A stretch of DNA of 64,000 nt from Octopus sinensis. Taxonomy: Eukaryota. The translations under genes were made by a program, and so were the position numbers. Where the stretch lies: contig NC_042997.1 in the NCBI RefSeq assembly GCF_006345805.1, positions 131,688,001 through 131,752,000 on the forward strand. The letters run 5' to 3'. This document shows, piece by piece, positions 37,198 through 61,196 of the stretch. A model generated the notes under the pieces. The model ran no database searches. It saw only the letters and a program-made list of their open reading frames with translations, and was not told the origin of the DNA. Position 1 is the first letter of the stretch; every line of letters starts with the position of its first letter.

Positions 37198-37261
37198 GTG
37201 GAGTGGACAAGAATTGCCGGCCTCAAGTTTCAAATCTTCGACCTGGCAGTATTGCACACAG
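37198..37261 (+). CDS. GRIP1: Next GRIP exon (PDZ1 continued): (G)[20 protein letters not shown](R)
   Basis: Acceptor atgttttAG and donor GTaaac; 64 bp, phase 1 to phase 2. It joins in frame to exon 11478-11549 and aligns with recalled human GRIP1 [22 protein letters not shown]. Confidence 0.92.
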
Positions 37262-37334
37262 GTAAACAAATTTTTCTCTTTTTTTTTAATTTATTAAAGG
37301 CTTTAATCTGTCTTTATGTTAGATGTGTGTATAT

Positions 37335-37665
37335 TTTCTCTTCAATGCCATCACGCTTCAGGACCAGTTTCTGCAACAGCCTGGGTTTCAAGGGCCCACA
37401 GCTTTTTAATATTCTCCCAAAAAGTCTGAGGAACTTGCACAAAGTAGATGTAGGGGTTTTTAAATCAAAGCTGGACCTCTACCTGTCAAGAGCTCCAGAT
37501 GAACCTACCTCATGGCAAGAGGTGCAAATGAGGGTAGCTATATCAAACTCCATGCTTCACCAAGTGCCACATATTAGAGGAGGCTCTTAGTAATAACAGT
37601 GTAGCAAAACGGCGGTGCATCAGCATGGCCACAGCTCTGAGCTGAAACTAGAGAGAAAAAAAATA
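37335..37665 (+). mobile_element. 3' end of a different CR1/L2-group LINE
   Basis: Peptide NSLGFKGPQLFNILPKSLRNL...FKSKLDLYLSRAPDEP is typical of CR1-group ORF2 C-termini; followed by a 3' UTR and an A-rich tail. Confidence 0.7.
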
Positions 37666-38064
37666 AAGGAGGAGGAAATCTTGTTGATCAAATACACCAT
37701 TTCATCACACGGTGGCTAGGTGTGATGAAAACTCCTACCCCACTACCTGGTTACTAAGTAGGTAAGAACAGGGAGAGACAGAAAGACTTTCATAGTCCAA
37801 AATAATAATAAATTCAATTCTGTGAATTGAATTTATTTAATTTTTTTAGCTCCAAGATGAGAAAGAGGTAGCAAAACTGGTTAAGTACCAAATCAAATTA
37901 TCCTTACAGTATTTATGTTTCTTTAACTTCTTGGTTCCCATTTTCCTGATTCCAGTCTAATGAAAGGTAATCAAATCACTTTTGATCTGTTAATAAAATA
38001 AGTATGAGTCAAGCAATGGGGTTGATTAAATCAACCACATCTCTCCGTATAAAATTTGCAGCTT

Positions 38065-38237
38065 AAAGTCATAAATTTAGTTAGAAATAAAGAGCTGTTT
38101 CCATGCCATTTGTGGGCTTTCTTAGATAGGTGAAGTTAATGCAGCTTTGTACTTCAGATGAAAGTCATAAATTTAGTTATAAATAAAGAGCAGTTTCCAT
38201 GCCATTTGTAGGCCTTCTTAGATTGGTGAAGTTAATG
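38065..38237. repeat. Local tandem duplication with a 96 bp period
   Basis: aaagtcataaatttagtta...ggtgaagttaatg at 38065 and 38161. Confidence 0.85.
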
Positions 38238-38528
38238 GAGATGATGTTAAGATTAAAAGCCACTATGACAATTGTAGAAAGGAAGGGACTTCGAGAAGAA
38301 AGCTGTTTTGGAGGAGGAATGTTTATGAAGGTTGTTTAGTGTGGTGGAATTTGGTGAATAAAGTTTTGTAAGGATATGAAATGAAGACATACTGTTGCTG
38401 AAAATGGTATGTAACCAGTGAGTAATTAAGAGCAGGAACTATTGTAATAATGGAGAAAGAGACCAAGAGAAAACACAGCATATTTCTATGTCATTGATTG
38501 TTGAGTATTGGATAGTAGATCATAACTA

Positions 38529-39051
38529 CTGTAAATCCTTGAATATAATCTACATTTTTTCCCCAAAATTTAACAGTCAAAATCCCTAGTGCGTACTATA
38601 TATGATGCTAAAAATGAAAAATATTTTCTAAGCAATGTCCGAGTCTCTATTTTCTGTCTGGCAATGTTTATTCAGATGCATTTTGTGATGTCAGGCACGA
38701 AAATACTTTAAGCTAAGCCTGAAAGCAATGAAGTCACAAAAGAATCATCCATTACTTGCAGTAAACAACATTTATTAAAATAAAAGTATTCAGAACACAG
38801 AATAACATGTAACAAAAACAATTTGCAAACATATTTTCATTCCCATATAACAGTTAAGAACATTACCATTATTGTATTACGCATGCGCGGAAGTGTTTGT
38901 TCGACTAAGTGCCGCTGGCTTAATTACGCACGACTCAAGTTAGAGAAGAGGTGCATATTGTACACAAGGTTTAGGTTTTTCAGAGGCACAGCCCCACTAA
39001 AAATTCCCTGCATATTATACTCAAGGGCGGACTATACTCTAGGATTTACGG
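38529..39051. mobile_element. Tc1/pogo-type MITE with TA TSD
   Basis: TA-ctgtaaatccttgaatataatc ... gactatactctaggatttacgg-TA. Confidence 0.75.
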
Positions 39052-59499: not shown

Positions 59500-60010
59500 A
59501 TGTTTTCACCGACTTCACCATCTCTGTACGTTTATATTTATTGATATTCCTAATTATACTCTCCAACAATTGTTTTGAATAGGGCTATTGGCATATCCGT
59601 ATAACTTATAAGCAGTTACCATCGTGATGACATTTCCAGAGAACTGCTTATGATGTGGATCATATCTTCAGTATTAATCCAGAGTGCACACAGGCTATTA
59701 CAATTAGTTTTTGTTTGCTTTTTACATAGATCCCTATTTTATTCTGCATCACATGTTGTAGATATTTCCTGTTGCGGGATTGCAAACGTGAGGTTAATTT
59801 ATGGGCCGTTTGACCAAAACCGACATTAGTTACCTTGTCTTACCCCGCTTTTAATGCATATCTTCTGAATTTATATTATGAAAATTTGTTGGGTGTCTTC
59901 CTCTGATCATCAGCGAGAGAATACATTCCAAGTCGGCGCTTTCTACTTCTCATGAAACTGTGTTCATGACATACACAGAGTTAAGTCATCATACATGGAT
60001 TCACGTCTGC
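59500..60010 (-). mobile_element. Decayed RTE-like endonuclease-region fragment
   Basis: The minus strand gives a frameshifted VMNT..RSRKRR...DDQRKTPNKF pattern resembling the NT.F...TW.SP..T..QID motif of RTE APE domains. Confidence 0.35.
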
Positions 60011-60171
60011 CAGAGGTGTTCAATAAAGTATGGCGGGGAATTCAGAGGCTTTTAAGAATAAAATTAGACATATGATGTTGTGCTTTATTTTCAGTAAAAA
60101 TGGTTATCATCATCAGTCATGTAGGATTTCTTCGAGTTACTTACTAGATTCTGAGTATTATTCACGTCCGT

Positions 60172-60479
60172 GAAGGCGCATCGCTCAGTGGTTAGAGCGT
60201 CGATCTTACGATCGTGAGATTGTGAGTTCGAATCCCGGCTGCGTGTTGTGTTCTTGAGCAAGACACTTCATTTCACGTTGCTCCAGTTCACTCAGCTGTA
60301 GAAATGAGTTGCAATGTCACTGGTGCCAAGCTGTACCGGCCTTTACCTTTCCCTTGGATAACGCTGGTGGCGTGTAGAGGGGTGGCTGGTATGCATGGGT
60401 AACTGCTGGTCCTCCATAAACAACCTTGCCCGGACTTGTGCCTAGGAGGGTAACTTTCTAGGTGCAATCCCCAAAAAAC
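60172..60479 (+). mobile_element. tRNA-derived SINE family D with an 11 bp TSD (ttcacgtccgt)
   Basis: A box tcagtggttaga, B box gttcgaatcc. The TSD is at 60161-60171 and 60480-60490. Confidence 0.9.
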
Positions 60480-60539
60480 TTCACGTCCGTAATTCATCTA
60501 GCGTTCAATCGAATAAACCAAATCTTGGTATGAATACTA

Positions 60540-60845
60540 GGAGCACTCAGTCGGTTACGACGACGAGGGTAACGGCTGATACGATCAACGGAACAGCCTG
60601 CACGTAAAATTAACGTGAAAGTGACTGAGCAATCCACAGAAATGCGTACCCCTAACGTAGTTCTCAGGGCAATTCAGCGTGACACAAAGTGTGACAAGGC
60701 CGGCCCTTTGAAATACAGGTGCAACTCATTTTTGCCAGCTGAGTGGACTGGAGCAGCGTGAAATAAAGTGTCTCGCTCAAGGACACAACGCGTCGCCGGG
60801 AATCGAACTCATGAATGTCCTAGCCACTAAGCCACGCATCTTCAC
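60540..60845 (-). mobile_element. SINE family D-related, different 3' module
   Basis: Shares the ttgagcRagacactt.atttcacg.tgctccagt.cactcagctg core with 60172-60479. Confidence 0.85.
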
Positions 60846-61101
60846 ATGGTATGCGTACTACTACAACAGACTTGAATGGTATGAGCACTACTACAACCGG
60901 CTTAAATGACCTTCTCGTTTGCAGTGTCAAAAAAAGAACTCCGACTACTATATTTATATCTGACCTACTTATGTGTTTCGTGGCGGAGCGAGCATGCATA
61001 TCACATTCAAATGATATGTGTGTACATAATTATATTTTTATGCATGAGTATAATAATAATGGTGTATGTCTATATTCATGTATCGATCTTTCTCTTTGCA
61101 G

Positions 61102-61196
61102 AAGCTATGGCACTTCATCCCGCTTCGATAACGCAACGAATACGATTAAAGCGTTGCTTAAGGGATATGATATACGACTTAGACCCCAATTTGGAG
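61102..61196 (+). CDS. LCCH3: Exon of a Cys-loop ligand-gated anion channel, GABA-A beta/LCCH3-like: (R)SYGTSSRFDNATNTIKALLKGYDIRLRPQFG(G)
   Basis: Acceptor tctctttgcAG and donor GTaaga; 95 bp, phase 2 to phase 1. GYDIRLRPxFGG is the hallmark of Drosophila LCCH3 (NVTQTISNILQGYDIRLRPNFGG) and vertebrate GABRB (LLKGYDIRLRPDFGG). The NAT sequon sits at the LCCH3 NVT position. Confidence 0.9.

Follow-up and report, generated by a model that had tools for sequence, protein, structure and literature searches.

Does the octopus gene for the multi-PDZ scaffold GRIP (glutamate receptor-interacting protein) break off in the middle of its first PDZ domain (PDZ1), and does a receptor gene start within it? 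The question is raised by a 64,000-nt stretch of Octopus sinensis DNA (RefSeq assembly GCF_006345805.1, contig NC_042997.1, positions 131,688,001 to 131,752,000 of the forward strand). This whole stretch is called the window below, and positions are counted from its first base. It is AT-rich and repeat-rich animal DNA with 37% G+C and an N count of 0. A sequence-only reading of the window had stated that GRIP stops halfway through PDZ1, that no continuation exon precedes an exon resembling LCCH3, a gene related to the beta subunits of gamma-aminobutyric acid type A (GABA-A) receptors, 23.8 kb downstream on the same strand, and that a repeat block at 41.5-48.4 kb lies in between. It offered a nested receptor gene in a very large GRIP intron, a rearrangement or partial duplicate of GRIP, or an incorrect assembly join as explanations, and it saw in nesting a link between a receptor-trafficking scaffold and a ligand-gated channel. 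In the current study, we favor with moderate confidence the reading that the window is a slice from the 5′ part of GRIP, that the missing exon lies off the window past a huge, repeat-filled intron, and that a lone beta-type exon sits within this intron.

Two exons of GRIP are present in the window. Exon A (11478-11549, + strand) has canonical splice sites and encodes the first part of PDZ1, running (E)…(G), and exon B (37198-37261, + strand) encodes the second part, (G)…(R), and ends in phase 2, with ttttag/GT as its acceptor and CAG/gtaaac as its donor. Spliced together, they yield 46 residues that make up the first half of PDZ1. The PDZ1 of rat GRIP1 (PDB 2QT5) matched this peptide with an E-value of 9.4e-15, compared to 0.18 or worse for other PDZ proteins, and the Pfam PDZ profile gave a weak match to the half-domain (E 0.029). 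When 1.8 billion representative proteins were scanned with HMMER, an Octopus bimaculoides GRIP protein (P0001, 1086 aa) was found to include the exact 46 residues, and both exons show 100% identity to GRIP of O. bimaculoides, O. sinensis, and O. vulgaris. The exons are separated, inside PDZ1, by a CpG-depleted intron of 25,648 nt (11550-37197, + strand). The next intron begins at 37262 and runs to 64000 on the same strand, making it at least 26,739 nt long, an assignment that assumes the window is physically continuous. To search for further exons, tblastn was run with 29 query isoforms of cephalopod GRIP, which came from O. bimaculoides, O. sinensis, O. vulgaris, and Argonauta hians and included one protein derived from a transcript, with a word size of 2 and E-values up to 10 for P0001 and up to 0.5 for the other isoforms. 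No third GRIP exon was detected in the window besides A and B, and the sequence CDALEVGDFILSVNG... is missing from 37262-64000. The absence of a continuation exon before the LCCH3-like exon was therefore correctly observed, and it extends to the end of the window. Reading through the exon B donor (37259-37267) gives AGG TAA, so that a transcript retaining this intron would encode a protein that terminates directly behind ...SIAHR, partway through PDZ1.

The conclusion that GRIP stops at this point, however, did not survive comparison with full-length proteins, since octopus GRIP proteins that are identical to the window exons continue into the rest of PDZ1. All 29 isoforms compared proceed from ...SIAHR to CDALEVGDFILSVNGIRTS... 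after exon B. Full-length models of 1057-1174 aa that contain both window exons followed by the rest of PDZ1 exist in four octopods (O. bimaculoides, O. sinensis, O. vulgaris, and A. hians), with the remaining exons located outside of the window. The span of the gene is shorter in A. hians (261 kb) and O. vulgaris (265 kb) than in O. bimaculoides (536 kb) and O. sinensis (660 kb); given some 20 or more coding exons, the average intron measures about 10-25 kb. Both intron positions that split PDZ1 are common to Lottia gigantea (L001) and Gigantopelta aegis (L002), where an orthologue of exon A was also found. The first PDZ1 intron measures 0.3 kb in Lottia and 2.8 kb in Gigantopelta, and the second measures about 1.0 kb and 2.2 kb, respectively. 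Transcript evidence comes from a different cephalopod, in which exon A runs directly into exon B and on into the following exon within a single Logan contig of 3,977 nt (SRR19578111), and the split arginine codon at the junction of exon B with the following exon reads AG/A. The apparent mid-PDZ1 stop is the look of a conserved intron that has been enlarged more than tenfold. The third PDZ1 exon is located past the end of the window, as no GRIP match occurs after 37261 within it, and GRIP as a gene is almost certainly intact and not truncated. Our model is that PDZ1 is encoded on three exons split by two old intron positions, and that transposons and microsatellites have enlarged the octopus introns at these positions, the first to 25.6 kb and the second to over 26.7 kb. 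Enlargement of this kind would leave the third exon outside of the window without truncation of GRIP. The second of these introns would also carry, in sense orientation, one exon derived from a GABA-A beta/LCCH3-type gene. A separate observation concerns the GRIP locus of Gigantopelta, where exons for PDZ1, PDZ2, and the beginning of PDZ3 occur a second time in diverged form (41503-49892 of that sequence), on the same strand and inside the first intron (40 kb) of the annotated GRIP. These additional exons show 57-73% identity to Patella GRIP2 and 50-72% identity to GRIP of their own locus, and could represent either the duplication of an exon block or a paralogue missing from the annotation.

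The presence of a GABA-A beta/LCCH3-like exon on the GRIP strand was borne out. The exon (61102-61196, + strand) is 95 nt long and starts 23,840 nt past exon B. Its frame is open, each of its ends contributes 1 nt to a split codon, and it is bounded by the acceptor ctctttgcag/A and the donor GGAG/gtaaga. Among PDB entries, its peptide, (x)SYGTSSRFDNATNTIKALLKGYDIRLRPQFG(G), which includes an NAT sequon, matched the N-terminal helix of GABA-A beta1-3 with an E-value of about 3e-4. The best PDB matches were all beta subunits, and GABA-A alpha chains were about 100x weaker, at 0.04 or worse. A tblastn search with a human beta3 query, which serves as a lead only, recovered the exon at an E-value of 1.3e-4 with no other above-noise match in the window. 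Over the conserved LLKGYDIRLRP.FGG motif, the exon shares 15 of 19 residues with vertebrate beta subunits. The 566 bp that enclose the exon (60798-61363) occur only once in the window and have repeats on both sides. Exon 2 of vertebrate GABRB genes, the one after the signal-peptide exon, is presumably about 92 nt long with its donor at FGG/PPV, which likens the octopus exon to exon 2. Judging from its sequence, the element looks like a genuine derivative of a real beta/LCCH3-type exon, and it appears to be intact, with predicted splice competence, in sense orientation within the second PDZ1 intron. An alternative role as a coding cassette of GRIP was considered and rejected. Spliced after exon B, the element would be in frame on its 5′ side (AG+A = Arg), but its length of 95 nt would put the GRIP exon that follows out of frame, and it occurs in none of the isoforms compared. 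The 171-aa open reading frame (ORF) enclosing the exon was not found as a called gene, and neither a usable octopus LCCH3/beta sequence nor the peptide of the exon was found in the literature.

A number of observations weigh against reading the window as one uninterrupted piece of GRIP with a lone exon in its intron, and they concern both the receptor-like exon and the composition of the DNA around it. Gene tables for O. bimaculoides, O. sinensis, A. hians, and O. vulgaris, which hold protein-coding genes only (not pseudogenes or non-coding genes) and perhaps do not always list same-strand nested genes, show no second protein-coding gene within the range of GRIP. Neighbors are reported in these tables, as indicated by the flanking ceramide-kinase gene in that of A. 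hians. Likewise, no second gene is listed within GRIP of Lottia, Gigantopelta, or Solemya, and the receptor-like exon is absent from the GRIP locus DNA of Lottia and Gigantopelta. A scan for a signal-peptide exon upstream of the receptor-like exon (an ATG, a hydrophobic stretch, and a donor in the right phase) returned low-complexity or implausible candidates only, none of them convincing. No further receptor exon occurs in the remaining 2.8 kb to 64000, where the sequence that was read ends, and no other segment resembling a pentameric ligand-gated ion channel was found in any frame across the window. Exons for the Cys-loop and the four transmembrane helices are likewise not present in the window, and could be situated past 64000 given the intron lengths, so that their absence here carries no information on the gene as a whole. 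On balance, the indirect evidence from the gene tables and from the GRIP loci of the other molluscs leans against an annotated nested receptor gene.

The adverse evidence from composition is a discontinuity in CpG content. The observed/expected ratio of CpG is 0.31 over 1-41500 and 0.99 over 48400-64000, with ranges of 0.13-0.61 and 0.82-1.11, respectively, in 2-kb bins, and G+C is equal across the switch (0.365 left, 0.368 right). A single-change-point likelihood scan placed the switch at 41533, the base before a 172-bp microsatellite, with a log-likelihood ratio of 183; the probability of G after C is 0.057 to the left of this position and 0.175 to the right. When 14 pairs of homologous repeats from the left and right sides were compared, CG on the right corresponded to TG or CA on the left at 82 sites, and the reverse was seen at 15. 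This imbalance indicates that the left side lost CpG in place via deamination-type changes and that the right side did not. In-place decay of CG to TG or CA is the footprint of long-term germline methylation. Together, the CpG ratios and the decay of the repeats show that germline methylation has long differed between the halves of the window, and the position of the switch puts the GRIP exons and the receptor-like exon into different long-term methylation domains. In O. bimaculoides, methylation is found on the bodies of a subset of genes and is absent from transposons, from the DNA between genes, and from most neuronal genes (Macchi et al., 2022; PMC9476566). Partly methylated gene bodies do occur in octopus, and the partial pattern MP3 has an unmethylated 5′ end and a methylated 3′ end (PMC9476566). 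A gene body that is methylated 5′ and unmethylated 3′ falls outside of the four O. bimaculoides patterns (PMC9476566). The boundary of CpG depletion is new and unexplained.

The repeat block at 41.5-48.4 kb, which had been suspected as the site of a faulty join, is real and consists of TA-rich microsatellites around a decayed long interspersed nuclear element (LINE), without a gap. It opens with the 172-bp (TA/TG)n microsatellite (41534-41705), whose first base directly follows the change point, and continues with two copies of a 123-bp tandem unit (42095-42352) and a 1.76-kb (TATG/TA)n microsatellite (42440-44203) that abuts the 3′ end of the LINE. The LINE, a degraded non-LTR retrotransposon of ~3.9 kb (about 44204-48066, - strand), has its reverse-transcriptase and endonuclease frames split into several ORFs. 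These matched RVT_1 with E-values of 2e-5 and 5e-5, both under the Pfam gathering score, and the match to Exo_endo_phos was faint (E 0.088). A (TA)n microsatellite (48065-48407) is found at the 5′ end of the LINE. The occurrence of TA-rich microsatellites on both sides fits insertion of the LINE into one simple repeat, as opposed to a join. The LINE block was also tried as the junction itself and rejected, because the CpG switch is situated to the left of it and the DNA at 41.7-42.4 kb already has normal CpG.

Bearing these points in mind, we still consider it reasonably likely that the whole window, including its right-hand 22 kb, is contiguous GRIP sequence and intron in the animal. The CpG switch may be a natural domain edge, for example one created by an unannotated transcript over the left part. 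It is also possible that a true structural junction exists at about 41.5 kb, where recent copying or relocation of a segment of the real beta-receptor locus left an orphan exon in the GRIP intron, or where a partial 5′ duplicate of GRIP came to lie upstream of a real receptor gene. Such a junction agrees with a change point that is sharp, placed at a microsatellite, and flanked by equal G+C, as well as with in-place CpG decay on the left side only. The lack of an annotated nested gene in GRIP of four octopods fits an orphan copy or a non-canonical GRIP locus, and apparent duplication of a 5′ block of GRIP exons is seen in a gastropod (the 41.5-49.9 kb set of Gigantopelta). Nevertheless, both GRIP exons of the window are perfect with intact splice sites, no alternative PDZ1 block occurs in any octopus isoform compared, and a boundary between methylation domains can be natural, given that partly methylated gene bodies exist in octopus (PMC9476566). 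Junctions of this type are also rare per 64 kb, unlike nested or stray exons in introns of 25 kb or more, and we regard the structural explanation as unlikely. A chimeric contig, in which a GRIP intron was joined to a receptor locus at simple repeats, is the least likely of the possible sources of the switch, because the switch occurs at a repeat shorter than long reads and without a gap. The strong difference in CpG depletion between the sides, and a switch at a microsatellite that is followed by long TA-rich arrays, are what a chimera could produce. However, the window has no N, long reads can span a 172-bp repeat, the similar microsatellites on both flanks of the LINE have the look of an insertion, and full-length GRIP is annotated as a single locus in four species; an assembly error is accordingly very improbable.

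The nature of the receptor-like exon can be weighed in a similar manner. A chance open frame is hardly credible: the exon comprises only 31 codons and its E-values are modest (3e-4 and 1.3e-4), but its residues agree with vertebrate beta subunits across the helix motif, its best structural matches are all of the beta type, and a strong acceptor and donor exactly bracket the homologous stretch. That the exon is part of a live nested gene, as opposed to a stray or recent copy, is conceivable, although we lean toward the latter. The fuller proposal of a live, unannotated GABA-A beta/LCCH3-type gene that is nested in sense orientation in the PDZ1 intron and occupies its own unmethylated domain from 41.5 kb is doubtful. 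If true, it would place a synaptic scaffold gene and an inhibitory-receptor gene in one transcription unit. A 5′ slice of GRIP with an enlarged intron and a single receptor-like exon is the preferred reading. With respect to the explanations first offered for this locus, the very large intron is the best supported part of the nesting proposal, but the receptor gene amounts to one exon. Rearrangement, partial duplication, or misjoining is not needed to explain the missing exon, but these readings are kept in play by the abrupt change in CpG depletion at 41533, at the left edge of the repeat block. The suggested functional link between scaffold and channel received no support from any test in the analysis.

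Other repeats are scattered over the window. A decayed remnant of a mariner/Mos1-type transposase (49622-50354, - strand) matched Pfam Transposase_1 (E 1.4e-13) and HTH_48, and SETMAR and Mos1 in PDB. Copies of an element resembling a short interspersed nuclear element (SINE) occur at 15353-15498, 50478-50622, 60170-60309, and 60724-60797 with 78-93% mutual identity, and two fragments are situated just upstream of the receptor-like exon. Directly downstream of the exon is a 180-bp inverted repeat (61364-61543) that resembles a miniature inverted-repeat transposable element (MITE), with an opposite-strand self-match of 82%. The LINE, mariner, SINE-like, and MITE-like repeats are ordinary content of octopus introns. 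In the left part of the window, a very young 73-bp tandem repeat (18539-18905; five copies, 98% matches) yields a ladder of similar minus-strand ORFs. Two further tandem arrays, at 17241-17606 (184-bp unit) and 22689-23323 (228-bp unit), have a common core, ...CCCCAGT.CA.AACTGGTACTTAATTTATCGAC.CCGAAAG..., and their element family was found again elsewhere in the window. An ORF of 112 aa (52227-52562, + strand), whose tail is rich in Cys (...NGSKRCSVCPLEKPYLL...), was not matched by any Pfam profile and is probably a remnant of an uncharacterized mobile element. Scanning the complete window against Rfam and for tRNAs returned nothing. A PDB search in which the ORFs of the window were concatenated as pseudo-proteins detected the mariner remnant only and missed the receptor-like exon, which served as a positive control, indicating that the approach is too insensitive.

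Overall, the finding is mostly ordinary, with two loose ends in the form of an unannotated beta-type exon and a sharp boundary in the methylation footprint. Its practical value is the removal of a false alarm, as a cephalopod gene of 0.3-0.7 Mb with 25-kb introns can be expected to look as if it stopped mid-domain when only 64 kb are viewed. A perfect beta-receptor exon where four annotations list only GRIP may point to an overlooked gene or to recent copying, and a recent copy might serve as a frame-shifting "poison" exon of GRIP. The sharp intronic boundary of CpG depletion is a usable marker for assembly continuity and for the limits of methylation domains in octopus.

Compared to known systems, the receptor-like exon resembles GABRB1-3 and insect LCCH3 in its LLKGYDIRLRPxFGG helix motif and in the N-glycosylation sequon just upstream of the motif. 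It differs from them in that a single exon is present in the window, where the signal-peptide, Cys-loop, and transmembrane exons were not seen. As in same-strand nested genes of long introns, a foreign sense exon with predicted splice competence lies in a host intron of >26 kb, but a complete gene was not seen. The window also resembles the mosaic gene-body methylation of octopus (PMC9476566) in that a CpG-depleted domain, with decay of CG to TG or CA, lies beside a non-depleted one. In contrast to MP3, the boundary here is intronic and runs from methylated to unmethylated in the 5′ to 3′ direction along GRIP, which is the opposite order (PMC9476566). The GRIP exons themselves agree with the seven-PDZ scaffolds GRIP1/GRIP2 (Grip in Drosophila), as they match PDZ1 of rat GRIP1 and are identical to annotated Octopus GRIP. 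Their boundaries are common to GRIP of Lottia and Gigantopelta, from which the octopus gene differs here only in the size of its introns, at 25.6 and >26.7 kb vs. 0.3-2.8 kb.

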